Shown: positions 15,140 to 36,600 of the stretch, one piece after another
Position numbering within the stretch: position 1 is the first letter of the stretch
How the letters are laid out: every line of letters starts with the position of its first letter
NCBI RefSeq assembly: GCF_000737315.1
Contig: NZ_JMCB01000006.1
Span: 186,001-250,000, forward strand
DNA: 64,000 nucleotides
DNA from: Hyalangium minutum
Lineage (GTDB): Bacteria; Myxococcota; Myxococcia; Myxococcales; Myxococcaceae
Direction of reading: 5' to 3'
Translations under genes and position numbers: made by a program
The notes under the pieces: generated by a model
Seen by the model: only the letters and a program-made list of their open reading frames with translations
What the model was told of the DNA's origin: nothing
Databases searched by the model: none

Positions 15140-17533
15140 CTACTCGGCCCGCAGCGTGAGGCCCGGATCCACCTTGGCCGCCCGGCGCGCGGGCAACCAC
15201 GCCGCCACCAGGCCCACCGTGCCCAGCAGCGCCGCGCACCCCAGCAGCGTGGGGATGTCCGCCGGAGTCACTCCATAGAGGAGACTGCGCGCCACCTGCG
15301 CCAGCCCCACCGCCGCCGGGAGCCCCACCAGCAACGCAATCCCCAACATCCGCCCCACCGAGCCCACCACGAGCCGCACCAGGTTGCGCTCCGTCGCTCC
15401 CAATGCCCTGCGGATCGACAACTCGCGCGTGCGCTGGGTGATGCCGTAGGACACCACGCCCCAGATGCCCAGCGCCGCCAGCACCAGCGCCAGCCCCGAG
15501 AGCGCGGACAGCAGCGCCAGCAACAGCTCATGGCGCTGCCGGCTCCTCGCCACCAGCGAGCCAAGCTGCTCCAGCGCGGGCACCGGCAGCTCGGAGTCCA
15601 CGCCGTGCACCGCCTCGCGCACCTGCGCCAGCGTGGGCGCGGGCGTGCCTCGCATGAGCAAGTACAGCTGCGGCGGCCCCACCTGCGCCACGGGCCAATA
15701 GAACGCCGGAGCCGGAGCCGCCGTCAGCTCGCGGTGGCGCACGTCCCCCACCACGCCCACCACCGTCCACCACGTCTCACGGTCGATGGTGAAGCGGCTG
15801 CCCAGGGGCTCCCGTCCCGCGAGGAAGCTCCGCACGAAGGCCTCGTTGACCACCGCCACCGGAGCACTCCCCCAGGCGTCCGTCGAAGCCAGGAGCCTGC
15901 CCGTCTTCAGCGGCACGCCCAGGGCCTCAAAGGCGCCAGGGCTGACCACGCGGTGCTCGGCGCTGCGAGGCACTCCCGTGGCATCCGTCCCCTCCACCGT
16001 GACAGTCGACGAGGTGGTGGAGCCCCCCAGGTGCAGCTCCCGCTGCACCCCCACCGACTGAACCCCCGGGAGCGCCGCAACGGCCTCCTCCAACCGGTGG
16101 GCGGCGCGAATGCGCGAGGCCTCGTCCGGGTAGCGCTGGGCCGGCAGTTGCACCGCCGCGGACACCACGCCCTCGGCGTGGAAGCCCAGATCCACGGAGG
16201 AGAGGTGCGCGAGCGTCCGCACCAGCAGCCCCGCCCCCGTGAGCAGCACGAGCGCCAGGGTGAGCTGCACCACCACGAGCCCCGAGCGCAGCGGGTGGCG
16301 AGCCCCCGTGCTGCCGTGGCCGCCGCCCAGCAGCGGCAGGAGCGAGGCCCTCGAGGAGTCCAGCGCTCGCACCAACCCCAGGAGCACCGCCACGGCGCCA
16401 CAGAGTCCCGCTGTGAAGAGCAGCACGGGCAGGTGGAGCGTGGGCGGGGCCAGGTTCCGCAGCGCCGTGGGCAGCAGCGCCGAGAGCGCATCGGTCCCCC
16501 ACAGCGCCAGGAGCAGTCCCACCACGCCGCCCAGCAGCGACAGCAGGAGACTCTCGGCGAGCGCCTCGCTCACGCGGCGGCCCACGCTGGCCCCCAGCGC
16601 GGTGCGGATGGCGCCCTCCCGCCGGCGGTGCATCGCACGCGCCAGCATCAGGTTGGCCACGTTGGCGCAGGCAATGAGGAGCACGAAGGCCGCGGCGCCC
16701 CACAGCGCGAACACCACGCCCCGCGCCCGCCCCGTCACATCCTCCTGCCAGGCCAGAGCGTGCACCGTGTGCGCCGACTCCGTGGCGTCACTGGACTCGC
16801 GGGTGCCTCGCAGCATGGCACTGCGGCGGAGGGCCGCCTGGCGCGCGGACTCCATCGGCACGCCGGGCTTCAGCCGTCCCATCACCGACAGCATGTGGTT
16901 GCCTTGGGCCTCCGAGGAGGTGTCCAGGTGGAGGGGCAACCAGACCTCCACTTCGCGCGAGGAGTCCCCCAGCGCAAAGCCCGGCGGCAGCACCCCCGCG
17001 ACCCGCACGCTGGTGCCATCCAGCCAGAGCGTCTGATCCGCTGCCGCAGCCGCGGAGGTGAACACCCGCGTGGCCAGCCCGTTCGAGATGAGGGCGGAGG
17101 ACGCCGCCCCTGGGAGCGCATCCTCGGGCGTGAAGGCACGGCCTGCGGCAGGCGCCACGCCCACGACGGAGAGGAAGTTCGGGGTGATGCGGGCCGCCAG
17201 GAGGCGCTCGGGCAGCTCGCCACCCGTGCGGTTGACGAAGGTGTAGTGGAAGCTCATCACCCCACTGAAGGCCTGCGCCTCCTCGGCCCAAGCCGCAGCC
17301 TCGGGCTGGGAGACACTGCCGACTCCCCCCGAGGGCTGGTTGCAGTACAGCCGCACCAAGTCCCCGCTCTGGGGAAAGGGCAGCGGGCGCAGCACCAGCG
17401 CATGCACCATGCTGAAGATGACGGTGTTGGCCCCCAGCGCCAGCCCCAGCGTGAGCACCACGGCGAGGGTAAAGCTGGGGGTGCGGCGCAGACCGCGCCA
17501 GGCGAACCGGGCGTCTCTGAGGAAAACTTCCAT
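15140..17533 (-). CDS. Duplicated MacB/FtsX-type ABC transporter permease (ADOP-like)
   Basis: LRDARFAWRGLRRTPSFTLAVVLTLGLALGANTVIF, ACANVANLMLAR..RRREGAIRTALGAS, RTRELSIRRALGA, WLPARRAAKVDP. Confidence 0.92.
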   Translation of the reverse strand: MEVFLRDARFAWRGLRRTPSFTLAVVLTLGLALGANTVIFSMVHALVLRPLPFPQSGDLVRLYCNQPSGGVGSVSQPEAAAWAEEAQAFSGVMSFHYTFVNRTGGELPERLLAARITPNFLSVVGVAPAAGRAFTPEDALPGAASSALISNGLATRVFTSAAAAADQTLWLDGTSVRVAGVLPPGFALGDSSREVEVWLPLHLDTSSEAQGNHMLSVMGRLKPGVPMESARQAALRRSAMLRGTRESSDATESAHTVHALAWQEDVTGRARGVVFALWGAAAFVLLIACANVANLMLARAMHRRREGAIRTALGASVGRRVSEALAESLLLSLLGGVVGLLLALWGTDALSALLPTALRNLAPPTLHLPVLLFTAGLCGAVAVLLGLVRALDSSRASLLPLLGGGHGSTGARHPLRSGLVVVQLTLALVLLTGAGLLVRTLAHLSSVDLGFHAEGVVSAAVQLPAQRYPDEASRIRAAHRLEEAVAALPGVQSVGVQRELHLGGSTTSSTVTVEGTDATGVPRSAEHRVVSPGAFEALGVPLKTGRLLASTDAWGSAPVAVVNEAFVRSFLAGREPLGSRFTIDRETWWTVVGVVGDVRHRELTAAPAPAFYWPVAQVGPPQLYLLMRGTPAPTLAQVREAVHGVDSELPVPALEQLGSLVARSRQRHELLLALLSALSGLALVLAALGIWGVVSYGITQRTRELSIRRALGATERNLVRLVVGSVGRMLGIALLVGLPAAVGLAQVARSLLYGVTPADIPTLLGCAALLGTVGLVAAWLPARRAAKVDPGLTLRAE

Positions 17534-17625
17534 AGGGGCGACAGCCTCCGGAGCCCCCATCAAAGCAGGTTCCGCGCCAACCCCGCCGGGAGCCTCCCCC
17601 CTGCGAGCCGCCGAAGGGCCTCGCC

Positions 17626-18474
17626 TCAGACGAGCGGAGGCTGTCCGGTGCTGGGACGGCCCGTCCCGAATGCGGACACCGGGTGTGAATCCACCGGGGA
17701 CTCCCGGTACGAGCGGAGCTGACCGAAGAACCCGTTCGCCAGCGCATCCCTCCGGGCCAAGAGCCGCCGCTTCACCTCACGGAGCTCCTGCAGGGCCTCC
17801 CGGTGCTCCATCGAGAGCCAGGACAAGGACGAGGGCCGGGAGAACAGCTCATCCAGGCGCCGCTCGAACGTCTCGGCCTTCTCCACGAGCTGCCCCGACA
17901 CCATGTCCGCGTAGCTCGCGTATCCCCGCCGGATGACCAGATCCAGGGTGAGCACGCCCGCGCCCCAGCACAGGCGGGTGTACGCGGTCCAGAGCCCCAC
18001 CTGCTTCCGCATGACGTCACTCTGCGACAGGAGCGCCTCGGCGACCGCGATCAACTGCACGACGCTCCGGTACAGCTCCGTCCACAGGCCCGTGGCACGC
18101 TCCGCCTCCCGCGCGGCGAAGTGCATCTTCACCAGCTGGACGGCGGAGAGCAGCTGTCCCAGCAGCAGCATGTCCAGCGGGGCGGCCGTCACCGGCCTCT
18201 GCACGGACCGCTGGACGATCTCCTGAGACAGGGCCCGGAGCTGGCTCTCGGCGCTGAGCATGCGCGAGTCCAGGGCCTCGTGGAGCACGAGAGGAACCAG
18301 GGGCCGCAGGCACTCGGCCAGGGTGTCCTGATCCACGCGGGCCTCGCGGATCAACTGGATGATACGTCCTGTCTTGCCGTCTCGAATGACTCCGCCTTCC
18401 AGGTAGAGCTGGCCAGCCTCGATACCCTGCTGGACTTCCTGAGCGATCCCCCACTTCGCTTCCATGACGGGCAT
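17626..18474 (-). CDS. Hypothetical protein (N-terminal GGVIRDxxTGRII motif, helical remainder)
   Basis: GGGAGG RBS 8 nt before the ATG at 18474; open frame of about 282 aa with normal composition. Confidence 0.7.
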   Translation of the reverse strand: MPVMEAKWGIAQEVQQGIEAGQLYLEGGVIRDGKTGRIIQLIREARVDQDTLAECLRPLVPLVLHEALDSRMLSAESQLRALSQEIVQRSVQRPVTAAPLDMLLLGQLLSAVQLVKMHFAAREAERATGLWTELYRSVVQLIAVAEALLSQSDVMRKQVGLWTAYTRLCWGAGVLTLDLVIRRGYASYADMVSGQLVEKAETFERRLDELFSRPSSLSWLSMEHREALQELREVKRRLLARRDALANGFFGQLRSYRESPVDSHPVSAFGTGRPSTGQPPLV

Positions 18475-18719
18475 GTCTCGCGCCTCCCACGGCTCGAATA
18501 CCCGACTCGGAGGCGAGGCACCGCTGGCCACGGCCGGGCCTCGGCGGGAAACGTCCAGAACCCGGTGACTGGAGCGGTAGCCACGCGCGCTCGCTTGCAC
18601 TGGTGAACGGTCGCCCGCTGCACGGCACCGCCCCCTCAAAGTCTCATGATTTGAGCAACAAACCCTCGGGCCGCAGGCCGGTGGGGTGATTGTCGCTCAG
18701 AGGAGGTACGCTTGCGTGC

Positions 18720-20445: not shown

Positions 20446-20695
20446 GTCGCACCCGGGTTTTACTCAAGGGAGCAAGCGCGCTGGCTTCTTCCTCGGGGGC
20501 CGCCCTCTGAGCATTTCAGTGAAATCGTGGTAACGGAGCGGCGTTGAACTTCAAAACGCTTTAGAGTATCAACCATCCGCATCCGAGAGTTTCCCCCTTC
20601 CGGGGGACCGTGCCAGGCCGGGGCCAGCCGCATCCGCGGACTTGAGGGGCGTCACGAGGGCGGGACTCAGCCCGCAGCCTCGAAGGAACCTACAT

Positions 20696-22010
<1,315 letters not shown>

Positions 22011-22027
<17 letters not shown>

Positions 22028-22943
22028 CGCCAAGACCGGGTCGAAGACGTTCACGTGGCTCGTCACCCTCGCGGCGGCGGGCCACCTCGTCTTCGTCACC
22101 GCGATGGGGAGGCTGCGGTGGGAGCACGCCGCGGCCGACCTGTTGCTTGCGGGGCTGGCTTGGGCCGGCCCCGCGCCGCGGCGTTTTCTCCAAGGCGGCT
22201 TCCCGCTGTGGCTCACCGGCATGCTGCTGGACAACCAGTGGCTGTGGCTGGGCCTGCGCGGCCGCGTCCACACCGGGGACTTGTGGGAGCTGGAGCGTGT
22301 GCTCTTCCCGTGCCCGGACGGCACCACCTGGCCTGCGTACTTCGCCACGCGCACCCACGCGGTGCTCGATTTCTTCTGCGGCTTCTCCTACGCGGCCTAC
22401 CTCTACGAAGTCTTCGGACTGGCGCTGTTGTTCTTCTTCCGCAAGCACCCGCGCTTCGCGACCATGTGCTGGGCCTTCTGCCTGCTGAACGCCATGGGCG
22501 TGGTGACGTACATGCTCTACCCCGCGGCGCCTCCCTGGTACGTGATGGCGTACGGCCCCGGTCCCGCGGACCTCACGGCTCCACCGAGCCCCGCCGGCAC
22601 CGCGCGCTTCGACGCGCTGATGGGCATCAGCTACTTCGCGAAGTTCTACGCCCGCAACCCCAATGTCTTCGGGGCCATGCCCTCGCTGCACGCCGCCTAC
22701 CCGACCCTGGTCGTCTGGCAGTCGTGGGGGTTGGGCCGGAGCTGGCGCGTGGGCACCATTGCATTCGCCGCACTGGTGGCGTTCTCCGCCATCTACCTGC
22801 AACACCACTACATCTTGGACGTCGTGGCGGGAGTGGTTGCCGCTCTGGCCGCCTGCTGGATTGTTGAGTACGCCCTCGTCCGGCGTGAATCTCCAGCTTC
22901 CGCGACCGTCCCCGTCATGCCTGGAGGCGACAGCCGTGCTTGA
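22011..22943 (+). CDS. Aur1-like inositol phosphorylceramide synthase (PAP2_3 superfamily)
   Basis: YPAAPPWY, NVFGAMPSLHAAY and QHHYILD match the Aur1/LPT catalytic domains; multi-pass membrane protein; start overlaps the ino1 3' end by 17 nt. Confidence 0.85.
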
Positions 22944-24177
22944 AACCCTGATGGCCTGGATCATGGGAGACCTCTCCCCTTCCGCGCGAATCTGGACGGC
23001 GCTCGGCCCGGCGCTGCTCGCGTGTGCCTACTTCATCCTGGGGCTCGTGGCGTTCTGCGTGCGCGTGGCCATCAAGGGCGTGCCGCAGGATGAGGAGACG
23101 CTCAAGCGCGGCAGCACCATCCTGGTGGGCATGTTCCTGCGCCACTACTTCTTCTGGGTCACCCAGCCCCTGTGGAAAGTGATTTACCGCTCGGGGCTGC
23201 CGGCCAACGCGCTGTCCATGCTGTCGGGCCTGCTGGGCGTGTCCTCGGGCGTGGCGGTGGCGGCGGGGCGCTTCACGCTGGGCGGCTGGCTCTTCCTGGC
23301 CTCCGGCATTCTGGACGTGATGGACGGGCGCATCGCCCGCATCCGCAAGCAGGCCAACCCGGCCGGCGCGGCGCTGGACTCGGTGCTGGACCGGTACGTG
23401 GACTCGGCCATGCTGATGGGCCTGGCCTGGTACTACCGGGACAACTGGGTGCTGCTGCCGGTGCTGGTGGCGTTCCTGGGCACCTCGCTGGTGCCGTACG
23501 TGCGCGCCCGCGGCGAGGGCCTGGGCATCAACATCCGCGGCGGCGCCATGCAGCGCCTGGAGCGGGTGCTCTTCCTGGGCGTGGGCGTGGCGCTGGCGCC
23601 CATCTTCGAGGCCATCTGGTTCCCCGAGCAGAAGCACCCCATGCACTGGCTGGCGGTGGTGGGCATCGTCTTCGTGGCCATCATGAGCAACGTGACGGCG
23701 TTCTCGCGGTTCCGGGCGCTCGTCAACGCGCTGGCGCCGCCTCCTCCTACGAGCCGCAAGCGCTCGGGGCTGGCAATCCTGGGCCTCAACGCGCTGGCGG
23801 GCGCGGTGGCCACGGGCGTGGACTTCGTGTCCGTGCTGGGAATGGTGGAGAAGCTGAGCTTCACGCCCGTCATCGCCACGGCGCTGGGGTGCGTGCTGGG
23901 TGGGGTGGTGAACTACTCGATGAACCGGCTGCTGACATTCCGCAGCCAGAGCGCGGTGGCGCCGCAGCTTGCCCGTTATACGTTGGTGAGCGCGACAAGC
24001 GCGCTGCTCAACGCGGGGGGTGTGGCGTTGCTCACGCTGCACCCGCAATTGGCGTACACGCTGGGATGGTGGTTGGCTCGAGGGGCGGTGTACTTCGCGT
24101 GGAACCTCCCCCTCCAGCGGGACTACGTCTTCAATGACCCGCCGGAGGCGCTCATGGAGCGCCCTCATGCGGCATGA
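22936..24177 (+). CDS. CDP-alcohol phosphatidyltransferase (probable PIP/PI synthase) fused to a GtrA-like domain
   Basis: Signature DVMDGRIAR..GAALDSVLDRY; C-terminal four-helix GtrA pattern ATGVDF..GGVVNYSMNRLLTF..LARY; GGAGG RBS then GTG overlapping the upstream stop. Confidence 0.9.
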   Translation: MLETLMAWIMGDLSPSARIWTALGPALLACAYFILGLVAFCVRVAIKGVPQDEETLKRGSTILVGMFLRHYFFWVTQPLWKVIYRSGLPANALSMLSGLLGVSSGVAVAAGRFTLGGWLFLASGILDVMDGRIARIRKQANPAGAALDSVLDRYVDSAMLMGLAWYYRDNWVLLPVLVAFLGTSLVPYVRARGEGLGINIRGGAMQRLERVLFLGVGVALAPIFEAIWFPEQKHPMHWLAVVGIVFVAIMSNVTAFSRFRALVNALAPPPPTSRKRSGLAILGLNALAGAVATGVDFVSVLGMVEKLSFTPVIATALGCVLGGVVNYSMNRLLTFRSQSAVAPQLARYTLVSATSALLNAGGVALLTLHPQLAYTLGWWLARGAVYFAWNLPLQRDYVFNDPPEALMERPHAA

Positions 24178-25150
24178 CAAACTGTCTCTGCTAAGCCTGC
24201 TGGCCGTGCTCGCCCTGCCCTCGCTGGCGGGCGCGAGCGCCGTGCTGGAGCCGCTGCCCTCCTCGAACGACAACTACGGGGAGAGCTTCACCTTCATGGT
24301 GGACCTGGAGGACGGCACCTTCGTCTTCACCCAGTTCTCCATCACCAACCTGGGGCCGGGCTCGCGCCACGGCATCTGCCGGGCCACGGTGGTGCGCCCG
24401 GGGCAGAAGACTTGGTCGCCTCAGGTGAAGGTGAGCTCGGACGAGTGGGGCTACGACGCGGCCACCTCCACGCTGAAGATGGGGCCCTGCACGCTGCACG
24501 CTGGCACGGGCACTTTCCTGTCGCTGCCGCTGGACAACGGGCTGGTGAACATCACCTTCAGTGATCCGCCCTCGCCCAAGTCTCCTCCGGGCTCGGAGGT
24601 GGTAGTAGGCACCACGCGCTACCGCCACGAGGTGCTGCTGCCCTTCAGCGCGGCGAAGGTGGGTCTGCGGCTGCCGGGCTCCAACGCGCTGCTGGAGCTG
24701 TCCGGCGTGGGCTATGCGGACCACTCGCACTCCACGGTGGCTCCGGCGAAGCTGGCGCGCAGCTGGGTGCGCTTCCGGGCGCTGCGCTCGGGCGGCTCCA
24801 ACCTGCTGCTGCTGGCGCGCGAGGGCTTCGACGGAGGCTTCACCCCGGCCTACGTGTGGCCCGCGGGCGGTGAGCCGCAGGTGCTGCAGCGCTTCGAGCT
24901 GCGCCGCCAGCCGGGTGACTCGAAGAAGGCGGGCTGGGAGGCGGACCTGAGCGGCGCGGGGGGTGCGCTCTCACTGAAGGCCACCTCGCTGATGCTGCGC
25001 ACCGCGCCGGTGCAGGACCTGGGAATCTTGGGCAGCCTGGTGCGGCCGGTGGTGGGCTCGCCGGTGACATACCTCATGCGGGCGGTGCTGCAGCGCCCGG
25101 GGCAGCCAGACGTGCACGGGCTGATGGAAGTCACGCTGGATGAGGGGTGA
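24167..25150 (+). CDS. Secreted beta-rich protein resembling the Svf1/AttH double-lipocalin family
   Basis: Signal peptide (MRHDKLSLLSLLAVLALPSLAGA); ESFTFMVDLEDGTFVFTQF..TN, YRHEVLLP, PAKLARSW, VGSPVTY and HGLMEVT blocks follow the order I recall for yeast Svf1. Confidence 0.6.
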   Translation: MRHDKLSLLSLLAVLALPSLAGASAVLEPLPSSNDNYGESFTFMVDLEDGTFVFTQFSITNLGPGSRHGICRATVVRPGQKTWSPQVKVSSDEWGYDAATSTLKMGPCTLHAGTGTFLSLPLDNGLVNITFSDPPSPKSPPGSEVVVGTTRYRHEVLLPFSAAKVGLRLPGSNALLELSGVGYADHSHSTVAPAKLARSWVRFRALRSGGSNLLLLAREGFDGGFTPAYVWPAGGEPQVLQRFELRRQPGDSKKAGWEADLSGAGGALSLKATSLMLRTAPVQDLGILGSLVRPVVGSPVTYLMRAVLQRPGQPDVHGLMEVTLDEG

Positions 25151-25186: not shown

Positions 25187-25804
25187 GTGAACGTCTCGTT
25201 GCTACGAGAAGTGCACCACGTGCCGGGCGTGCGAGGGTGGGTGCGCAAGCAGGTGCTGCGCTCGGTGGCGCGCGTGGTGGAGTGGACGACGAAGCTCCCA
25301 GGGCGTGGAATGAACGTCTCCCAGGTGAACGACTGGCTGTGGGTGGGCGGCTCGGTGTCCCGCTCGCAGTACGCGGCGCTGAAGGCCCAGGGCATCACCG
25401 CGGTCATTGATTTGCGCGCCGAGCGCGTGGACGACGCGGCGGCGCTGGCGGCGCTCGGCATCGAGCTGCTGCACCTGCCGGTGACGGACCGGTATCCGCC
25501 GTCCGTGGAGCAGCTGATGAAGGGTGTGGAGTGGGCGCTGCCGCGGCTGAAGGCGGGGGGCAAGCTCTACACGCATTGCGAGCATGGCGTGGGCCGAGGC
25601 CCGCTGATGGGGCTGGCGGTGCTGGTGGCGCAGGGGGCCGATGTGAAGGAGGCGTACCGCGCGCTGCGCGAGCGCCGCTGGCAGGCCACCCTGAACGACC
25701 GGCAACTGGGAGGGCTCGCGGACTTCACCGTGGCGTGGGAGGCGAGGAAAGCCCCGGAGCGCGTCTCCCTTCCCCCCGCCTCACCGGGAGCCACCGGTAC
25801 CTGA
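25187..25804 (+). CDS. CX5R dual-specificity/lipid phosphatase (probable PIP or PIP-ceramide phosphatase)
   Basis: HCEHGVGRG active-site loop, GITAVIDLR, LPVTDRYPPS general-acid loop. Confidence 0.88.
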   Translation: MNVSLLREVHHVPGVRGWVRKQVLRSVARVVEWTTKLPGRGMNVSQVNDWLWVGGSVSRSQYAALKAQGITAVIDLRAERVDDAAALAALGIELLHLPVTDRYPPSVEQLMKGVEWALPRLKAGGKLYTHCEHGVGRGPLMGLAVLVAQGADVKEAYRALRERRWQATLNDRQLGGLADFTVAWEARKAPERVSLPPASPGATGT

Positions 25805-25873
25805 CAGAGACATTCCCCCCCGCATAAAGGTCTGGCTGCGGTCTGAGAGTTCCCTGCTAAAGAGGTCGTGCGT

Positions 25874-26554
25874 ATGAGCCGTTCCTACCTCCGCCATCAA
25901 TCCGGCCGCATGTTCGAGAACAACTTTCTCGAGGCCTGCTCGAGAGTGCACCCATCGGTGCCGTTCCTCTTCTACATCCCGCTGACGCTGGGCTTGTATG
26001 CCTGGTCTCTCTACGGGGGAAAGACGACGCTGGGGTACAGCGCGCTGTTCGTGCCGCTGGGCGTGCTGACGTGGCTTGGCATGGAGTACAGCCTCCACCG
26101 CTACTTCTTCCACTGGGAGGGCAACGGTCCGTTCACGCGGCGGGTGCATGAGATTACCCACGGCTACCACCACAAGTACCCGGACGACGCGGACCGGCTG
26201 GTGATGCCGCTGGGCGCGAGCATCCCGCTGGCCATCGTGATTGGCGGACTGCTGTGGCTGGTGGGCCAGCCGGTGGCGACGATTCCGTACTTCCTGGGCA
26301 TCGTCTGGGGCTACCTGGTGTACGACTTCCTCCACTGGTCCACGCACCACCGCACGCCGCGCACGGCGTGGGGCAAGGCGCTGCGCGCGCACCACATGGC
26401 GCACCACTTCGCCACGCCGGATCGCAACTTCGGCATCAGCAACATGTGGGTGGACATCCTGGTGGGCAGCGGTGGCCGCCGCCCCAAGCGGACCGAGCAG
26501 CCGGAGCAGCCGGAGGGCCAGCGCCCCGAGGTGACCTCCGGCGTGACGGAGTAG
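25874..26554 (+). CDS. Scs7/FA2H-like fatty acid (sphingolipid) alpha-hydroxylase without a cytochrome b5 domain
   Basis: His boxes EYSLHRYFFH, HGYHHKYP, YDFLHWSTH, HHMAHH; RLVMP; SRVHP start motif. Confidence 0.9.
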   Translation: MSRSYLRHQSGRMFENNFLEACSRVHPSVPFLFYIPLTLGLYAWSLYGGKTTLGYSALFVPLGVLTWLGMEYSLHRYFFHWEGNGPFTRRVHEITHGYHHKYPDDADRLVMPLGASIPLAIVIGGLLWLVGQPVATIPYFLGIVWGYLVYDFLHWSTHHRTPRTAWGKALRAHHMAHHFATPDRNFGISNMWVDILVGSGGRRPKRTEQPEQPEGQRPEVTSGVTE

Positions 26555-26677: not shown

Positions 26678-27526
26678 ATGAGACACCTCTTCGCGGTGCG
26701 CTCCTTTCTCTCCGCTCTCGCCTGCGCGCTCCTGTGCTCCTGCGTGACCTCCCGTGGCGCCGCGCCCGAGGAGGAGGACGAGGGTGCGCTGGGGTCCTTC
26801 CTGGACTCAGGAGCCTCGGGCCTCGTGTGCGATGGAACGCGGCTGGTAGGGGCCACCTCCTTCTCGCAGACGTGCCTGCCGACGGGGAAGAGCCCTGGCC
26901 CCACCGTGTCCGGCCTTGAGCCACTGTCCGCGCCGCTGCGCGAGTGCGTGCTCACGAGCCTCCCGGTGGAGACCGGCGGCGGCACCTCCCCCGAGTGCTT
27001 GAAGGGCGCGGCACAGGTGCTCCAAGGCCGACTGCGCCAGCTGGGCTGGCTGGAGGCCGAGGTCCTCCCCGCGACGGGCCGGCCGGACGTGTCCGAGGCC
27101 CAGCTGCAGGCCCAGCTCCGGAGCCGCTACCGGGTGGGCGTGATGCGGGTGGAGCACAGCGAGGAGCCCGGCGTCGTGGATCCGGAGAAGATCCTCGTGA
27201 AGGCGCGCGCGGCGGTGCCCGAGGGCTCCTGGTACACCTCGGGTGCCCTGGCGGAGATCCACGCCCGCGTCTTTCAGATGAAGAAGTTCCGCTCGGTCTG
27301 GGTGTACGGCGGCGAGCCGGATTACCGGAACAAGATCATCCCGGTGATCATCGACGTCTGGGAGAAGCCCCAGAAGCCGCGCAAGGTGAAGATGGCCCGG
27401 CCCGAGCGCCCGAGGCCGCGGGACAACTGCCCGAGACGCGACGCCATCTGCCTCAACGGGCAGGACTGCTCCTACGACACGGAGCACCGCTGCACCGTCT
27501 GCTTCTGCCGGCCCACCTTCCGCTGA
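26678..27526 (+). CDS. Lipoprotein with a POTRA-like domain and a Cys-rich tail
   Basis: Lipobox LCSC; RYRVG..GSWYTSGALAEIHARVFQMKKFRSV..IPVIIDVWE resembles POTRA; six Cys in the last 32 aa. Confidence 0.7.
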   Translation: MRHLFAVRSFLSALACALLCSCVTSRGAAPEEEDEGALGSFLDSGASGLVCDGTRLVGATSFSQTCLPTGKSPGPTVSGLEPLSAPLRECVLTSLPVETGGGTSPECLKGAAQVLQGRLRQLGWLEAEVLPATGRPDVSEAQLQAQLRSRYRVGVMRVEHSEEPGVVDPEKILVKARAAVPEGSWYTSGALAEIHARVFQMKKFRSVWVYGGEPDYRNKIIPVIIDVWEKPQKPRKVKMARPERPRPRDNCPRRDAICLNGQDCSYDTEHRCTVCFCRPTFR

Positions 27527-27546: not shown

Positions 27547-28236
27547 ATGCTTCGCTCCCTGCTGCTCGTCTTCATCCACCTCTCGCTGGTGTCTTGTACC
27601 GCCAGCGCTCCGAAAGCTTCTCCGTCCTGGTGGCAGAGCCTCGACGACACCGAGGCACCCGTCGAAGACACCGAGGTGTCCTGCCGGGGCATCCGGGCGA
27701 GCGATGAACTCGATCGGCTCGCGAACTGCTGGCCCCAAGGCTCGCCTCGGCTCACGCCCATGGATGTGGCGGGGCTCGACGAGATGCGCGTCGAGCTCCG
27801 CGAGTGCCTGCTCGCGGACCTGCCAGCACCGGGAATGACAGGAGAGAACCAGGCCCGGTGCCAGCAGGGCCTGGCCGAGGTGCTCGATCAACGGCTCTAC
27901 CGGCTGGGATGGCTCCGGGCGGAGGTGGCTCCTCCGGGGAACGCGGAGGCGGGAGAGGCCCAAGCCCGGCCGCAGCTCACCGTGAAGCTCGGGCAGCGCT
28001 ACCGGATTGGCCAGCTCTTCGTGGCCACGGGCCCGAGTCAGCGCGTGAACTCCAAGAAGATCATCAAGCAAGCGCAGAAGGCGATCCCCAAGCCTCGCTG
28101 GTGCACCGAGACAGCGCTGGAGGAGATCCACGCCCGGGTGTTCGACACGTCGAAGTTCCAGGAGGTCCGGATCAATCGCGGCGAGCCCGATGAGCGGGCA
28201 GGGCGAGTGCCCATCGTCATCGTCATTCAGGAGTAG
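27547..28236 (+). CDS. Lipoprotein with a POTRA-like domain (paralog of the upstream gene)
   Basis: C-terminal part of ORF 26944..28236; GAGG RBS before ATG 27547; lipobox LVSC; shares LRECxL, RLxxLGWLxAEV, RYRxG, ALxEIHARVF, GEPD with the upstream gene. Confidence 0.75.
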   Translation: MLRSLLLVFIHLSLVSCTASAPKASPSWWQSLDDTEAPVEDTEVSCRGIRASDELDRLANCWPQGSPRLTPMDVAGLDEMRVELRECLLADLPAPGMTGENQARCQQGLAEVLDQRLYRLGWLRAEVAPPGNAEAGEAQARPQLTVKLGQRYRIGQLFVATGPSQRVNSKKIIKQAQKAIPKPRWCTETALEEIHARVFDTSKFQEVRINRGEPDERAGRVPIVIVIQE

Positions 28237-28272: not shown

Positions 28273-29928
28273 ATGGCCTTCCACTTCGACCGGAACTGCC
28301 GGCTGCTGGGCCCGTTCATCGGCCACACCACCGAGACGGAGGCCCGCATCTGGCTGCACGTGGCGGACCTGAAGCCCGGCGAGCGCCGCACGCTCCATGT
28401 CACCCTCCATCCGGACCGGCCGAACGCTCGCGCCGTGCAGCGGCTGACGCTCACCGTCTCCGAGGAGGACTGTGGCGTGGGCGTGGTCAACATCTCGGGG
28501 CTGGAGCCAGACACGCTCTACGTGTACCGGCTGACGTGGGACGAGGCAGGGCTGGCACCGATTGACCCCGGGGGCCTGGCGCCCGAGGAGCTGTGCTTCC
28601 GGACGCTGCCCCGGGCTGGCTTCAACCAGCAGCTCGATTTCCTGGTGATGAGCTGCCACAACCCGGAGACGGCGGTGCGCGATGGGGCGAACGGCTTCGC
28701 GGTATGGGAGCAGATGCCGGAGATCATCGCGCACAACAAGAACGTGCGCTTCGCGCTGCTGATGGGCGATCAGATCTACGCGGACGACATCGAGCGGAAA
28801 GCGCTGCGAGAGGAAGACCCGCTCAAGCGCGTGAAGCTGTACCTGGGCATCTACCGCAAGTACTGGAGCGACTTGCGCTACCGACGGGTGCTGTGTCGGC
28901 TGCCCGCCTATCTGATGTGGGACGACCACGACATCACGGATGGGTGGGGCTCGCGGGAGGACTCCTTCGAGGAGGCGCAGTCGGATGAGTTCAAGCCCTC
29001 GTGGAAGGGGATGTTCCAGTCGGCGCGGACGGCGTTCCAGCACATGCAGGCCTCGCGCAACCCGCCGCCGCTGTCGCCGGGGTACCAGGAGGGCTTCGAC
29101 ACATGCTTCCGGGTGGGGCGTGCGGGCTTCGTGCTGCCGGACCTGCGCAGCCACCGCAACGTGCGGCAGGGTCGCATCTGGACAGAGGCGCAGCAGGCCG
29201 CGGTGGAGCGGTGGGTGGCGTCGGAGCGGGAGAACCTGGACGTACTGTTCTTCTGCAGCAGCGTCGTGTTCTCGCACGGGCACCACGGGCTGGAGGCGCT
29301 GATGCGGAGCGGCTGGCCGTACGTGCTGCAGGCGGTGTCGTGGATGGGCTCCATCCGCTACGCGGGCCTGCGCAGCATGGCGAGCAGCTTCCACAAGAAC
29401 ATCGGAGACCTGCGGGATGATCTGAACGACAGCTGGGGTGCCGAGCCGAACCGGCGAGCCGCGGATCGGATGCTGGACTTCCTGTTCGGCCTGCAGAACC
29501 CGCCGAAGGGGCAGCGGCCGCTGAGCGTGGTGGTGCTGGCGGGGGACATCCACACGCCAGGGTACTCGACGCTGTACTCGTCGGATCCAGCGCACCGGGA
29601 ACGGCCGTCCATTCCGCACGTGGTGGCGTCTCCGGTGTCCTATCAGCCGTTCAGCTGGATGGCGGAGGCGGTGTACCGGCGGCTGACGCGCGTGGTGACG
29701 CTGGGGGAGCGAGGCGTGTACAGCGCGCAGGTGAGTCACCACTTCTCGCAGCGCAATGTGGTGGTGACGTCGCTGCGCAACGTGGCGGCGGACGAGTGGC
29801 ACCTCAAGGTGAAGTTCTACCTGGAGGGCTACCCGGAACCGCGCATCCTGCTGTTCGACTTGCACCGCACCTCGGGCCGCGAGGACATTCCCTGGCCCCA
29901 GGCGCGCGAGCCAAGCTTGCTGGGGTGA
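28273..29928 (+). CDS. PhoD/alkaline phosphatase D family metallophosphoesterase, no signal peptide
   Basis: GPFIGHTT, FN3-like region (GLEPDTLYVYRL), SCHN, MGDQIYADD, MWDDHDITDGWG, DLRSHR, LAGDIH. Confidence 0.85.
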   Translation: MAFHFDRNCRLLGPFIGHTTETEARIWLHVADLKPGERRTLHVTLHPDRPNARAVQRLTLTVSEEDCGVGVVNISGLEPDTLYVYRLTWDEAGLAPIDPGGLAPEELCFRTLPRAGFNQQLDFLVMSCHNPETAVRDGANGFAVWEQMPEIIAHNKNVRFALLMGDQIYADDIERKALREEDPLKRVKLYLGIYRKYWSDLRYRRVLCRLPAYLMWDDHDITDGWGSREDSFEEAQSDEFKPSWKGMFQSARTAFQHMQASRNPPPLSPGYQEGFDTCFRVGRAGFVLPDLRSHRNVRQGRIWTEAQQAAVERWVASERENLDVLFFCSSVVFSHGHHGLEALMRSGWPYVLQAVSWMGSIRYAGLRSMASSFHKNIGDLRDDLNDSWGAEPNRRAADRMLDFLFGLQNPPKGQRPLSVVVLAGDIHTPGYSTLYSSDPAHRERPSIPHVVASPVSYQPFSWMAEAVYRRLTRVVTLGERGVYSAQVSHHFSQRNVVVTSLRNVAADEWHLKVKFYLEGYPEPRILLFDLHRTSGREDIPWPQAREPSLLG

Positions 29929-31722: not shown

Positions 31723-31809
31723 ACACCTGCTTCCAGAAACGAGGCAGGCACTTGGACTCCTGTTTGGGCAGCATGAACTCTCTGCCCCCAAGAGCCGGTT
31801 GTGGGTGGC

Positions 31810-33507
31810 ATGCGTTTCTTCTCCGCCTCCCTGCTCTCTGTGCTCGTCGCGGGCACTGTCTCCGCCGCGCCCGCGGTCTGGACTGAAGGCCCGCTCCTCA
31901 AAGTGGGTCCCTCGACACCGGCCCAGAACCTCGCGCCCGCTCGCCTCTTGGCGGCTCGCAACGAGTTCGAGTCCTTCCAGATCGTCATCCGCGGGGAGGC
32001 CCCCGTCTCCGGCGTTCGCGCGAAGGTCGGCGAACTGACTGGCCCCCATGGCGCGAAGATCCCTCAGTCGAATGTGCGCCTCTACCGCGAGGCGCTCATC
32101 AACGTCACCACGCCATCGGGCGCGATCGGCGCCAAGGGGCGCTTTCCGGATGGCCTCATCCCAGATGTGGACGAGGTGGACGGCCAGATGCGCTCCGCTT
32201 TCCCCTTCGATATTCCCGCGGGTGAGGCGCACGCCCTCTGGGTGGATGTCCTCGTGCCCCTGGATGCACCGGCCGGCCTCTACACCGGCACCCTCCAGGT
32301 CTCCGCGGACGGGCTCGACACCCAGGTCCCCGTGGAGCTCGAGGTCCTCGGCTTCACCCTGCCCTCCACCCCAACGCTCTCGACGGCCTTCCGCGCCTGG
32401 CCCGCGTTCGTCTGCCTCGCTCACACGGGCACGGCCGACTGCGGGAGCCCCGAGACGGCCATCGAGCTGCTCTCGAAGTACGCGCGGCTTGCGCTCGATC
32501 ACCGCATCTCGCTCTCGAACCTCTTCGTCCTGCGCCGCGATCCCCAAGACACCGGAGTGGTGCTCGGCAAGAACGGCGAGGACTGGTCGGGCTTCGATAC
32601 GGCTTTCAGCCCGCTCCTGAACGGCACCGCGGCGACACAGCTCACCGGCGCGAAGCTCACCGCTGTCGAGTATGGCTGGGAACTCTCCCCCGAGGCGCTC
32701 GCGTCCTATGGCCAGCACGCCCGTGACAAGGGCTTTTTGGACCGCGTCTTCGACTACACCGCCGACGAGCCTCCTTATGGAAGCAAGTGGGAGGACATCG
32801 CGCCCCGGTCCGCCATCGTCCACGCCGCCGTCCCGGACATGCGCACGCTCGTCACCACGAACGTCAACGCCGCCACCGACAACAAGCTCGCGGACAGCCT
32901 CGACATCCTCGTGCCCGTCGTGAACCACATGGATGCACCCTTCGCCCCGTTCGCCGGCAATCAGCGGCCTCGCTACGAGGACTTCACCCGCCGGGGCGGA
33001 GAGCTCTGGCTGTACCAGAGCTGCATGAGCCACGGCTGCTCGTTCGGCGGCGCGGAGGAGGGCGCGTCCTGGCCGAGCTACATGGTCGATGTCTCCGCGC
33101 CTCGCAACCGCGCCATGCAGTGGGTCGACTTCGCGTACGGCGCGACGGGCGAGCTCTATTACGAGACCGTGCTCGCCTATGACCGTGACCCGTGGGCGGA
33201 CCAGTTCACCTTCAGCGGCAACGGCGATGGCACGCTGCTCTACCCCGGCAAGCCTTCGAAGATCGGCGGCAGCTCCGAGGTCCCCGTGCCCTCGCTGCGG
33301 CTCAAGCACATCCGCGACGGCATCGAGGACTACGAGTACCTGACCCTGCTGGCGAAGCTGGGGGACCGGGCGCTCGCGGAGAAGCTCGCGCGAGAGGTCG
33401 TCCCCACGGCCCACCGCATCAGCGAGAACCCGAACGTCATCCTCGAGGCGCGCCGCACCGCAGGCCGCCGGATCGCGGAGCTCAGCGCCCAGGCCGCTCC
33501 GGGCTGA
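31810..33507 (+). CDS. Secreted DUF4091/GH123-like glycoside hydrolase
   Basis: Signal peptide; AARNEFESFQ, ADEP, GNGDGTLLYPG, SLRLKHIRDGIEDYEYL. Confidence 0.85.
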   Translation: MRFFSASLLSVLVAGTVSAAPAVWTEGPLLKVGPSTPAQNLAPARLLAARNEFESFQIVIRGEAPVSGVRAKVGELTGPHGAKIPQSNVRLYREALINVTTPSGAIGAKGRFPDGLIPDVDEVDGQMRSAFPFDIPAGEAHALWVDVLVPLDAPAGLYTGTLQVSADGLDTQVPVELEVLGFTLPSTPTLSTAFRAWPAFVCLAHTGTADCGSPETAIELLSKYARLALDHRISLSNLFVLRRDPQDTGVVLGKNGEDWSGFDTAFSPLLNGTAATQLTGAKLTAVEYGWELSPEALASYGQHARDKGFLDRVFDYTADEPPYGSKWEDIAPRSAIVHAAVPDMRTLVTTNVNAATDNKLADSLDILVPVVNHMDAPFAPFAGNQRPRYEDFTRRGGELWLYQSCMSHGCSFGGAEEGASWPSYMVDVSAPRNRAMQWVDFAYGATGELYYETVLAYDRDPWADQFTFSGNGDGTLLYPGKPSKIGGSSEVPVPSLRLKHIRDGIEDYEYLTLLAKLGDRALAEKLAREVVPTAHRISENPNVILEARRTAGRRIAELSAQAAPG

Positions 33508-33632
33508 GGCCCGGACCTCATCTCGGCGGACTCAGCAGGGCATGGACGTGAATGTCTTCACCCGCGGTGCGAATCGGCACCTCTGGCAGAACGGATCCTT
33601 GTGTATCCTCGGGTCCTCTTCCGGAGCCTCCG

Positions 33633-36600
33633 ATGCCCACCACCCTTCGTCACTCCTTCTGTACCCTGACGTATGACTCCACCCACCGGCGCGAGGGCTT
33701 CGCGGACTGGGTGGTAGGCAATGCGTTCGCCTTCCACGCGGGCCAGGGTCCGGGGCCGCAGGTGCTCTTTCTCGGGAGCCCGGGCACGCTCGGCCAGGCG
33801 AGCAACCCGGTGAAGATCCAGCCGGAGGGGCTCGGCTTTCCTCCGCTCGTCGCGGTGATCACCGACAAGATGCTGTACCGCGAGGGCGACGACACCGTGC
33901 GCATCGTGGTGTACGCGCCCCGAGCCAGCGGCGCGGTGCAGCTCCGGCTCCTGCTCAACGGCTCGGAGCTGGCGAAGGTCCAGGTGGACGTGGACGAGAA
34001 CGGCCTGGGCCTGTTCGAGCTGAGGGATCCTGTCGCGGGCTCCTACTCCGTGGAGCAGGAAGCGGCGAAGGCCTCGTTCACCGTCGCGGCCTACAAGCTG
34101 GCGCCCCTCACCGGGCGGCTGGATCAGGTGCGCATCGAGGGCGGCAAGGGCGCGGAGACGCTGCACTTCACCGCGGTGCTGGAGACCTATGGAGCACCGC
34201 TCACGGGCTCGGTGAAGGTGACCCTCGTCGACATGGGCAGCCACCCGCCGGTTCATCGGACGTCTCTCACGCTGGAGGCCGATTCCGCCGGACGGCTCGA
34301 GGGCTCGGTCGCGCTCTCGGGTGCGGGCCCTTTCGCGCTGCAGGTGCAGGCCACGCGGGATGCGATGAAGACGGCCACCCTGCCCCTCCCCGGCTCGCGC
34401 CAGGAGGAGCGCGAGGAGGTGGTGCTCTCCGCGTGGGGCACTCGCACCGTGGCGCGCTTGGTGCCCTTCGAGGGCGCGCATGAGCGGCGAGGGCTGTGGA
34501 TCGGCTCCGGCGGCGAGAGCAAGGGCGCGCCCCTTCAGCTCGTGGAGGAGAACGGCAAGGCGCGGGTGCGCTTCCGGGCGGACATCGATGCGTGGCGCAT
34601 CGTCGTGATGGATGTGCACCGGGGCTCGGTCCAGGAGCTGTCCGGCGGGGCCACCGAGGCGGGCACTTCGCTGGATCTCCCCCTGGCCGGAACGTGGACG
34701 CTGGTGCTCGCAGGGCTCGCCTATCTGGGCCAGCGCTGGGAGGGCCGGGCCGCGCTCGTGGTCCCCGGCAAGCAGGTCCAGGTGCAGGCCCCGAAGACCG
34801 CGGGCCCGGGTGAAGAGGTGGACATCACCCTCCGAGGCACTCCGGGCGCCAGCGCCTTCGTGCTCGTCAAGGATCTGCGGCTGCAGGTGGCGGACACGCC
34901 TCAGTCCGCGACCGCCGCCTCCCTGCGCCGGCAGCTCGAGCATGCGCTCAAGGGCGTCAGCGATGGTCCAGTTCAGCGGACCCTCGATGCGCTGATCCCG
35001 CATCCTCCCCCACCGATGCCTCCCATGATGCCGGCCATGCCGATGATGGCCGTGCCCGCCCCCGCCCCCGGAGGTGCAGTGGTCCGGCGAGCTGGCGGCA
35101 TGCCACCCTCTCGGGCGCTGAGGGAAGAGAGGGCCACCGGCTCTCACCAAGCCCTCAGCAAGCAGGGAGGAGCCCCCGCGGCGGAAGCCGCCGCACCGGA
35201 CGAGAAGCCCGCGGAGGGACCCTCTCGGAGCTCATTCCCGGACGTGATGCTGGCGCGCGTCGTGCGGCTGGATGCGGAGGGCAAGGCAATCGTCCCGGTG
35301 AAGCTCGGCGACGGCATGGGCTCGCTGGCCGTGGAGGTCTTCTCGGTGACGCGCGAGGACTGGGCGGTGGCCCGCGCGGAGTTGCTGGTGACGAAGCCTG
35401 TCTTCGGAGAGCTGGTGCTGCCACGCTTCGTAGCGGCCGGAGACCACGCCGAGGGCGTGCTGCACGTCCGCGTGGCCTCAGGCGAGGCCACCGTCACCCT
35501 CCGGCGCGAGGGCAAGCCCGTGCGCCTGTTCTGCACCAATGAGAGCGGCGAGCAGCTGACCCTCACGGCACCAGGACAGGTGGTGCGCTTCGCCGCTCAG
35601 GCCGGCCGCTACCAGGCCGAGGTCCGCGGCGAGTCGCTCGTGGATCGCGCCGAGGGCAAGGTGGAGGAGCCCGGCAAGCTGGTCTGGCTGCAGCAGGCGC
35701 TGCGGATGCTGTCACCCGGCGAGCGCGTGGACCTGGAGCAGGAGCCGGGAGGCCTGGCGCTCAAGGTGCTGCCCTCGATCGACAAGACCTTCGATCGGAT
35801 GGTGGGCGGCCTTCGCTCTTACGCGCACTGCTGCTGTGAGCAGACGAGCGCCGTGCTGCTGGCGGCCACTGCCGCGTGGCTGACGGCGAAGGATGAGGAC
35901 ACGAAGCGCTCGGCGGCGGCGCACATGCGCGCGTGCATCGCCCGCGAGGAGTCCATGTACCTGCCGGGCAAGGGCTTCAAGGGCTGGCCCGAGTATCCGC
36001 CCGAGGTGTTCACGTACTCGCCCGGCGCCACGCTCAACCTGCTGCAGATGGACATGGTGAAGGCGTTCCCCATGGACAAGGAGCTGGCGAAGTCCGTGGA
36101 CCGCTGCCTGGAGATGGCCCGGGATGCGGCGAAGGCCCACGGGATTGATCCGGCCCCGCCGTCGCCCAAGTCCGCCCGGGAGGCCTACGGCCGCTTCTCG
36201 AAGTTCACCCAGGACCGCGAGAAGATGGCCGCCTTCATCCGCGAGCGCATCGAGCCGTGGGAGAAGCAGCTCAAGGCCATCCTCAAGTTCGAGTTGCCGG
36301 CCCTGCGCACGGAGAGCTACCACCACACCCCGGCGATGATCCGGGCGGAGACGGCCTTCGGGGCGGCGGCGCTGATCGAGGCCGGCGGAGAGCACCTGCC
36401 TCACGGACTCGCCCTGGCCAACACCGTTCTGGGGGCAGTCCAGGAGAACGGCAGCCTCTACTCCACGCTGGACTCGGTGGCGGCCATCACGCTGCTGGCG
36501 GCGCTGCGCAATGCCCGCATCGCCGTCGGGCCCGAGGGGAAGATCCGCGTGGATGGGCAGGACACGACGCTGGCCCAGGCAGTGACTCGCACGGGGCTCC

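Follow-up and report, generated by a model that had tools for sequence, protein, structure and literature searches.

A predicted periplasmic two-barrel protein of the AttH/Svf1-like fold superfamily is encoded in an inositol-lipid operon of Hyalangium minutum

Introduction

Among the closest described systems to the locus considered here is the BT_1522-BT_1526 gene cluster of Bacteroides thetaiotaomicron, in which the function of BT_1522 has been demonstrated; the same study cites ceramide-phosphoinositol in Myxococcus xanthus (PMC9246714). We analysed a stretch of 64,000 nucleotides from Hyalangium minutum (assembly GCF_000737315.1, contig NZ_JMCB01000006.1, positions 186,001 to 250,000 of the forward strand; referred to below as the window), in which a gene that we call T (24167-25150, plus strand) lies within an operon resembling the Bacteroides cluster. 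Both contain genes for a myo-inositol-1-phosphate synthase (MIPS), a phosphatidylinositol phosphate (PIP) synthase (PIPS), a GtrA-like protein and an Aur1-like phosphoinositol dihydroceramide (PI-DHC) synthase (PMC9246714). Whereas the Bacteroides cluster has a PgpA-like phosphatase and no T-like gene, the window adds T, a hydroxylase, a phosphatase of the dual-specificity-phosphatase (DSP) type and a fusion of PIPS with the GtrA-like protein. The route by which bacterial sphingolipids reach the outer membrane has been called "a mystery", and Lpt paralogues have been offered as a route for Caulobacter only (bioRxiv 10.64898/2026.04.12.717747).

Two further described proteins bear on T. For NE1406, the "putative AttH" of Nitrosomonas europaea (2ICH), the authors proposed a role in lipid transport together with membrane transporters and reported HHpred links to PF07143 at 1e-15 and to PF08622/Svf1 at 1.5e-7 (PMC2954199). 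Svf1 has been found experimentally to bind ceramide, for which His273/His274 of its cap helix are required (PMC10038888). A preliminary description of the window, made from the sequence without database searches, had taken T for a bacterial Svf1 homologue carrying ceramide through the periplasm. The analysis below leads us to favour, with moderate confidence, a different assignment: T would be a soluble periplasmic lipid-binding component that serves the pathway or the export of the inositol lipids phosphatidylinositol (PI) and inositol phosphoceramide (IPC).

Results

T encodes a probably exported protein with a predicted AttH-like two-barrel fold

Read directly from the sequence, the open reading frame (ORF) of T runs on the plus strand from an ATG at 24167 to a TGA at 25148-25150 and encodes 327 amino acids, with GGAG placed 7 nt 5' of the start codon in a window of about 69% GC. 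Its start overlaps the stop of the preceding PIPS-GtrA gene by 11 nt (ATGCGGCATGA), which indicates that T is translationally coupled to that gene. Residues 1-23 (24167-24235, plus strand) read as a Sec-type signal peptide, with predicted cleavage between AGA and S: the N terminus, MRHDKLSLLSLLAVLALPSLAGA followed by SAV, shows by eye a basic n-region, a hydrophobic core and an AxA site, so that the signal peptide announced in the preliminary description is indeed readable in T. The N terminus was also read for a lipobox Cys and has none, which rules T out as a lipoprotein, although one UniRef homologue is named "Lipoprotein". A hydrophobic N terminus is present in all 35 aligned homologues, and the pair Cys71/Cys108 is invariant among them. 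Judged from these sequence features, the signal peptide and the invariant Cys pair fit an exported, soluble T located in the periplasm, an oxidising compartment.

The AlphaFold2 (AF2) model of T, computed with the 35 homologues, has a pLDDT of 91.2 and a pTM of 0.87. When this model was compared with the Protein Data Bank (PDB) by Foldseek, the best match was 2ICH (E 3e-11, TM 0.61, 328 aligned columns, 15% identity), one of 21 PDB chains at E <= 8e-7, all of which have the AttH-like double-calycin fold (TM 0.55-0.62, 326-380 columns). Other matches are the fungal Diels-Alderases (Fsa2, Phm7, CghA, 7DMN), the kievitone hydratase 7A0T and the 25-phosphosteroid lyase 9G2I, a phosphate-binding protein with the highest query TM score (TMq 0.62, 16% identity to T). 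The first match outside the fold, 2O62_B, follows at E 3.8e-4 with a TM of 0.15. Only AttH-like proteins with two barrels, which either bind hydrophobic molecules or convert them, gave full-length matches to T in the PDB. An outer-membrane beta-barrel was ruled out, because porin and autotransporter matches stayed at TM < 0.2. The AF2 model of a genuine Svf1 protein (P0335, pLDDT 85) retrieved the same list of PDB matches as T, again with 2ICH first (E 5.7e-11). The comparison by AlphaFold and Foldseek that the preliminary description had proposed as a check thus gave 2ICH as the best match of both models, and this shared list, together with the published profile links of 2ICH (PMC2954199), places the modelled T and Svf1 in one fold superfamily, that of the AttH-like two-barrel proteins.

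T belongs to an undescribed sequence family

The fold was not accompanied by any sequence match. The single T protein gave zero matches against Pfam (E <= 10), NCBIfam and the PDB sequences. Its 129 close homologues are all from Myxococcota and all named "hypothetical", and a T-profile search of 1.84 billion representatives returned 529 clusters at E <= 1e-3, the best 150 of which make up the match list. None of the 85 members of a diverse T-family set matched Svf1, Svf1_C, CrtC_N (PF07143), PF09410 or Lipocalin_9 (PF17186) of Pfam at E <= 1. A marginal match to DUF7064 (E 0.013) occurred in one member only, and a search of the PDB sequences with the T-family profile did not retrieve 2ICH. Because no sequence match to the AttH, CrtC or Lipocalin_9 models was obtained, the T group is a separate sequence family within the fold. 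Our literature search found no description of this family, nor of an AttH-like protein tied to periplasmic lipid traffic; T therefore represents an undescribed sequence family within a known fold superfamily.

Many polar residues (E39, D46, Y183, D185, H186, R202, R204, R218, E219, R278, R305 and E321) are invariant in the 35 homologues, and E39 and E321 are kept in at least 90% of the 85 diverse members. The conserved basic residues of barrel 2, namely W200-x-R202-x-R204, R218, R278 and R305, would suit an anionic phospho-inositol head group. The Aggregicoccus sp. 17bor-14 genome has two T paralogues, P0098 (49% identity to the protein of the window) and P0111 (41%); the gene has therefore undergone duplication in some lineages.

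T is linked to PIP synthase-GtrA and to lipid-export genes

We collected 76 loci, scored the neighbours of T by tblastn and Pfam, and tabulated 66 non-duplicate loci. The constant partner of T is PIPS-GtrA, which adjoins it in nearly all loci with upstream sequence, and the adjacency spans Myxococcaceae, Archangiaceae and Anaeromyxobacteraceae. In three proteins the linkage has become a fusion: CDP-OH_P_transf, GtrA and T are joined in P0143 and P0148, and GtrA and T in P0099, with the former signal peptide retained as a hydrophobic linker or an extra transmembrane (TM) segment. The other recurrent neighbours of T are genes for MMPL transporters, MlaC and TolC-like outer-membrane efflux proteins (OEP).

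Six architectures can be distinguished. The first, found in the window and in Myxococcaceae and Archangiaceae, reads MIPS-PAP2-PIPS/GtrA-T-DSP, optionally followed by a fatty-acid hydroxylase, and is accompanied in about 30 loci by a divergent MMPL pair 1-7 kb downstream. The second is MIPS-PIPS/GtrA-T-MMPL-MlaC-OEP (L039/L070), and the third PIPS/GtrA-T-OEP (L040, L041, L046, L068). The fourth comprises PIPS/GtrA-T-MMPL in L067 and T-MMPL on the short contig L072. In the fifth (L049), T-MMPL-OEP with gaps of 24 and 37 nt lies divergent to a phosphodiesterase gene and has no gene for a membrane fusion protein (MFP). The sixth, in L002, L052, L054, L055, L057, L058, L061 and L074, is MMPL..OEP..MlaC-PIPS-GtrA..T next to a divergent PAP2 gene. 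As read from gene order, the T-MMPL, T-OEP and MlaC architectures represent independent couplings of T to export machinery.

The Aur1-like gene occurs in two of the six architectures, and no PAP2 gene was found within 8-10 kb of T in L039, L040, L041, L046 and L049. Every Myxococcaceae and Archangiaceae locus has a DSP-type phosphatase gene directly 3' of T. The hydroxylase gene is part of the operon only in the Hyalangium/Archangiaceae type; in Corallococcus the other strand encodes it, and a search of the fetched flanks of the Myxococcus and Pyxidicoccus loci did not reveal it. The conserved Aur1-Svf1-Scs7 trio suggested in the preliminary description therefore does not emerge from the comparison. 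PAP2 is missing from several operon types, the hydroxylase is lineage-restricted, and the gene that stays with T is PIPS-GtrA. The co-occurrence with the Aur1-like gene that was to be expected from such a trio fails in the same way across the 66 loci, where PIPS-T-OEP, PIPS-T-MMPL-MlaC-OEP and T-MMPL-OEP operons all lack PAP2.

The window itself encodes two MMPL/RND-type lipid transporters downstream of the operon. MMPL 1 (38144-40615, minus strand; PF03176, 3.4e-42) is 50.7% identical over 805 aa by blastp to the MMPL encoded directly after T in L039, and MMPL 2 (42634-45153, plus strand; PF03176, 4.5e-38) is 54% identical to the same operonic MMPL by tblastn. In the lineage of the window, the distance of this orthologous pair from T, on its downstream side, remains within 1-13 kb, and MMPL 1 and MMPL 2 are syntenic with the operon in Myxococcaceae. 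Between the two MMPL genes lies a gene for a type I phosphodiesterase/NPP-family protein (40789-42477, plus strand; PF01663, 5.5e-20), which could be an inositol-lipid or sphingolipid phosphodiesterase; its family also supplies the gene divergent to T-MMPL-OEP in L049.

In that L049 operon, T occupies the gene position of an MFP adaptor. No MFP Pfam domain was detected in the 85 T-family members, and the HlyD-type architecture of barrel-sandwich, lipoyl and alpha-hairpin parts differs from the double beta-barrel of T. Among distant members of the family (25-40% identity), one that is 25% identical follows an RND pump (L043), another lies near a DedA-type protein and an ABC exporter (L047), and a third near MatE genes (L044).

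Comparison of T with Svf1

The Svf1 sequences were fetched with a bait query, and the conclusions rest on the database proteins that it retrieved. They number 660; all 120 of those listed carry PF08622 and PF17187, and many are named Svf1 at source. P0266 (481 aa) has G7/G8, V12 and H273/H274 at the residue numbers of the Svf1 paper (PMC10038888), and is therefore the Saccharomyces cerevisiae protein (ScSvf1) or nearly so. Aligned by hhalign with 30 Svf1 sequences (Saccharomycotina only, Neff about 2.9), the 85-sequence T family gave a non-significant result (Prob 0.13%, E 0.44), as did five further settings (P 0.15-0.57), with hhalign probabilities of 0.1-0.3% overall, and the best local alignment pairs barrel 2 of T with barrel 1 of Svf1. 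In either direction, hmmsearch --max between T and Svf1 yielded at most 4.3 bits, a single BLASTP comparison of T with the ScSvf1-like P0266 returned E 0.78 and 2.2, and the Svf1 profile did not retrieve 2ICH from the PDB sequences. All Pfam, BLASTP, hmmsearch and hhalign tests against Svf1 were thus non-significant, and the claim that T is a Svf1 homologue in the sense of family membership has to be given up. The preliminary description had named the lack of both a profile match to Svf1 and a structural match to lipocalin barrels as grounds against its proposal; the former match is absent, but the latter is present in the AF2 and Foldseek results.

The proposal had been based on five sequence blocks. 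The strings quoted from T are all found in the protein, namely ESFTFMVDLEDGTFVFTQFSITN (39-61), RHEVLLP (153-159), PAKLARSW (193-200), R278..VQDL..VVGSPVTY302 and HGLMEVT (317-323), and the Svf1 blocks given for comparison also have counterparts in real Svf1 proteins, which carry VETxTFYFxDLxTGxxGFAQxIHSN, WGSMRHVFWPR, QGMKPHHAAKAW, ERVDVM..GTKPYIYQ and EVTFIS. The weak BLASTP and HMMER alignments between T and Svf1 consist of exactly these blocks, in collinear order. We scanned the T family against Svf1 by ungapped profile-profile comparison of blocks over about 390 offsets. The highest score of DLEDG..TNL (DLEDGTFVFTQFSITNL) fell on the Svf1 site predicted for it (12.5, with 5.3 for the second-best match). 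GYADHS..PAKLARSW and EVTLD were likewise top-ranked at theirs, and ESFTFMV was top-ranked in a tie with one other site. PVTYLMR ranked third at the expected site, whereas neither RHEVLLP nor the R..VQDL stretch (MLRTAPVQDLGILGS) matched there; the RH of RHEVLLP is not conserved even within the T family. The claimed parallel thus survives at the profile level for three of the five blocks and is lost for RHEVLLP and R..VQDL; two of the five lack conservation within the T family itself. Because the selection of the blocks was post hoc, their ranks are no more than suggestive.

A side-by-side comparison of the DSSP assignments for both AF2 models placed all five blocks in topologically equivalent elements: the hairpin formed by beta1 and beta2, the long strand that precedes the domain crossover, the strand/short-helix/strand that opens barrel 2, the helix preceding the last hairpin, and the last strand. 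We regard these parallels between the blocks as a hint at a very remote common ancestry of T and Svf1 and not as proof. The short helix 193-196 of the T model stands at the position of the Svf1 cap helix over the inter-barrel cleft. At the place of the two His residues that Svf1 requires for ceramide binding, however, T has A194-K195; across the family the consensus reads P-x-[KD]-[DL]-L-A, and none of the 35 sequences has a His. Moreover, Svf1 is a cytosolic protein of the ER/cis-Golgi interface that associates peripherally with the cis-Golgi and has an N-terminal amphipathic helix, whereas T has a signal peptide in its place, so T would work on the opposite side of the membrane. From the failed sequence tests, the missing cap His residues and the signal peptide, we conclude that T is not a member of the Svf1 family; it may nevertheless function like Svf1.

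The operon and other genes of the window

The genes from MIPS to the DSP-type phosphatase are tightly packed, overlapping or nearly abutting. MIPS (20642-22027, plus strand; PF07994, 3.9e-88; PF01658, 6.3e-32) is followed by an Aur1-like PAP2 enzyme (21957-22943, plus strand; PF14378 (PAP2_3), 1e-25), a putative phosphoinositol (dihydro)ceramide synthase equivalent to BT_1522, whose best NCBIfam match is the phosphoinositol dihydroceramide synthase model NF052609 at E 5e-43, below the curated cut-off. The longest PAP2 ORF overlaps the end of MIPS by 71 nt (21957-22027), compared with 23 nt in M. xanthus (L001), so that its true start is probably downstream of 21957. The next gene (22954-24177, plus strand) encodes the PIPS, a CDP-alcohol phosphatidyltransferase (PF01066, 1.3e-14), with a GtrA-like domain of four TM segments (PF04138, 6.4e-15); it is the equivalent of BT_1523 plus BT_1524 and matches the PIP-synthase models NF040950, NF052561 and NF045883 at 1e-26 to 1e-35. 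The two parts form one 407-aa protein in the window and in most Myxococcota loci, and are separate in Bacteroides and in L002-type loci. As deletion of the GtrA-like BT_1524 in Bacteroides gave no lipid phenotype (PMC9246714), the PIPS-GtrA fusion serves as a hint that GtrA acts in the pathway.

Downstream of T, a protein of the DSP type without a signal peptide (25187-25804, plus strand; PF22741, PF22785, PF00782) is likely to be the phosphatase that converts PIP to PI, replacing the PgpA-like BT_1525. The presumed PIP phosphatase is of the DSP/PTP type in the window, belongs to the HAD family in L002-type loci (L002 5043-5741) and is PgpA-like in Bacteroides, which looks like non-orthologous displacement of this step across lineages. 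The operon continues with a fatty-acid hydroxylase that has a catalytic domain of the Scs7/FA2H type and no cytochrome b5 domain (25868-26554, plus strand; PF04116, 9.6e-15). With an Aur1-like PAP2 enzyme, PIPS and MIPS around T, the operon is the myxobacterial counterpart of BT_1522-BT_1526, and the preliminary statement that T is embedded in an IPC operon was right in outline.

Two paralogous ORFs that lie in tandem and match no Pfam family (26678-27526 and about 27550-28236) share LRECxLxxLP, LGWLxAEV, ALxEIHARVF and GEPD, the second with a lipoprotein-type signal (LSLVSC); they are conserved 3' of the operon in Hyalangium-type loci and are followed by a PhoD-like phosphatase (28273-29928). 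Between the operon and the MMPL genes lie a GH123-family glycoside hydrolase (31801-33507), a 1180-aa protein with a weak alpha-2-macroglobulin-domain match (33552-37094) and a YdjM membrane protein (37112-38104). The GH123 family includes enzymes that remove GalNAc from glycosphingolipids. On the minus strand, 15140-17563 encodes an 807-aa MacB/AttFG-like permease with two FtsX domains and MacB periplasmic core domains, and its neighbour at 17626-18639 is helical with no family match. Such permeases usually adjoin AttH-like proteins, but no AttH-like gene is adjacent here, and an AttFGH-type link of T to this permease was dropped because it lies on the opposite strand and 6.6 kb away.

Discussion

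The role we favour for T can be outlined as follows. PIP would be made by PIPS at the cytoplasmic face of the inner membrane, and the DSP-type phosphatase would turn it into PI, as the families of the two enzymes suggest. The lipid would then reach the periplasmic leaflet, perhaps with the help of the fused GtrA domain; where an Aur1-like PAP2 enzyme is present, the lipid and ceramide might there give rise to IPC. From the inner membrane, T could receive an anionic inositol lipid (PI, IPC or both) and pass it across the periplasm towards the outer membrane, acting with MMPL/RND transporters, MlaC-type carriers and TolC-like proteins. We infer lipid binding, the identity of the ligand and the direction of transport from the observed export signal, the predicted fold, the conserved linkage and the fusion proteins. 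Judged by the genomic context, PI or IPC is at least as good a candidate ligand as ceramide.

Several observations weigh against this proposal. The Bacteroides cluster functions without a T-like gene (PMC9246714), so T is no general requirement of the pathway. The solved members of the AttH-like fold are mostly enzymes and not carriers. The MMPL genes of the window lie 13 kb from T, outside the operon, and the distant T members of L050 and L051 have no lipid-related neighbours. The PIPS-GtrA-T fusions can be frameshift or gene-calling artefacts of overlapping genes.

The enzymatic character of the fold leads to the best-surviving alternative, that T is a periplasmic enzyme modifying the inositol lipid or a by-product as a hydratase, a lyase, a cyclase-type enzyme or a remodeller of head groups. 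The Foldseek neighbours are mainly enzymes (7A0T, 9G2I, Fsa2, Phm7, CghA), and the many invariant polar residues, with E39 and E321 so widely kept, would be in keeping with catalysis. However, polar residues are just as numerous among the conserved positions of Svf1, a binder, in which the two corresponding strands also carry a conserved Glu, and the literature search revealed no additional step acting on myxobacterial ceramide-phosphoinositol for which an enzyme of this kind would be required. An operon consisting only of T, MMPL and OEP (L049) also fits transport better than biosynthesis, and we consider an enzymatic role unlikely.

The linkage of T could be explained in yet another way, with T as a non-transporting cap or stabiliser of PIPS-GtrA, or as a neighbour whose linkage has no lipid-related meaning. 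The tightest link of T is indeed the one with PIPS-GtrA, by gene overlap and by fusion, and the silent deletion of BT_1524 shows that members of such a cluster can be dispensable (PMC9246714). Yet T also occurs without PIPS-GtrA, beside MMPL-OEP in L049 or an RND pump in L043, and its fold is one used for hydrophobic ligands, which makes this explanation improbable. The idea of the preliminary description, that T is a true Svf1 orthologue specific for ceramide and feeding the Aur1-like IPC synthase, is very doubtful, since the shared fold superfamily, the collinear weak matches in equivalent structural elements with three top-ranked in the block scan, and a PAP2/Aur1-like gene two genes upstream in the window and adjoining T in L002-type loci stand against the failure of every significance test, the absent ceramide-binding His pair (PMC10038888), the periplasmic location of T as opposed to the cytosolic one of Svf1, and the five loci in which T lacks a nearby PAP2, whereas PIPS is the constant partner of T across the loci as a whole.

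Taking T to be a periplasmic lipid-binding protein, we tentatively raise a wider possibility, less probable than the role itself. T may found a new class of periplasmic lipid-transfer proteins with an MMPL/RND and a TolC-like partner, which might replace the MFP adaptor in T-MMPL-OEP systems and deliver PI/IPC to the myxobacterial outer membrane; given the fold, the topology and the few invariant positions common to T and yeast Svf1, AttH/Svf1 double-calycin proteins would then be an ancient lipid-transfer family for inositol-sphingolipid traffic in bacteria and eukaryotes. Whether or not it extends so far, the T family provides a concrete and genetically tractable candidate for inositol-lipid or sphingolipid transport in Myxococcus xanthus, a producer of ceramide-phosphoinositol. 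It comes with predicted partners, namely PIPS-GtrA, two MMPL transporters and, in related lineages, MlaC and OEP, and it offers a function open to experiment for more than 500 sequence clusters annotated "hypothetical". Bacteria and yeast both have the Svf1-type fold linked to inositol-lipid pathways, whether through shared ancestry or because a lipid-binding scaffold was reused. What is new about T is its sequence family and its context; the fold and the proposed job, that of a periplasmic lipid carrier, are already known.

Among known systems, carriers of envelope lipids that work with RND or MCE systems include MlaC and mycobacterial LprG with MmpL, and hopanoids are exported by HpnN-type MMPL proteins. 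Carriers of the MlaC/LprG type resemble T in its predicted job, as small, soluble, exported proteins that hold a lipid between two membranes, and T genes adjoin those for MMPL and MlaC; fold and sequence are unrelated. NE1406 (2ICH; DUF2006/PF09410) is bacterial, exported and the best structural match of T. It differs in its sequence and in its context of ABC/LolD-type transporters, whereas T is found with PIPS-GtrA and with MMPL, MlaC and OEP. Svf1 is unlike T in lacking significant sequence or profile similarity to it; conversely, T is without acidic inter-barrel loops, has an invariant disulfide-type Cys pair and has PIPS, not the IPC synthase, as its constant gene partner. Judged by the shared PDB matches, T and Svf1 are alike in having two lipocalin-like barrels of the AttH-like superfamily. 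They also have in common an invariant Glu in beta1 (E39 in T, E57 in Svf1) and in the last strand (E321 in T, E463 in Svf1), a P-x3-A-x2-W motif in the strand-helix-strand that opens barrel 2, and a genetic tie to inositol-sphingolipid synthesis.

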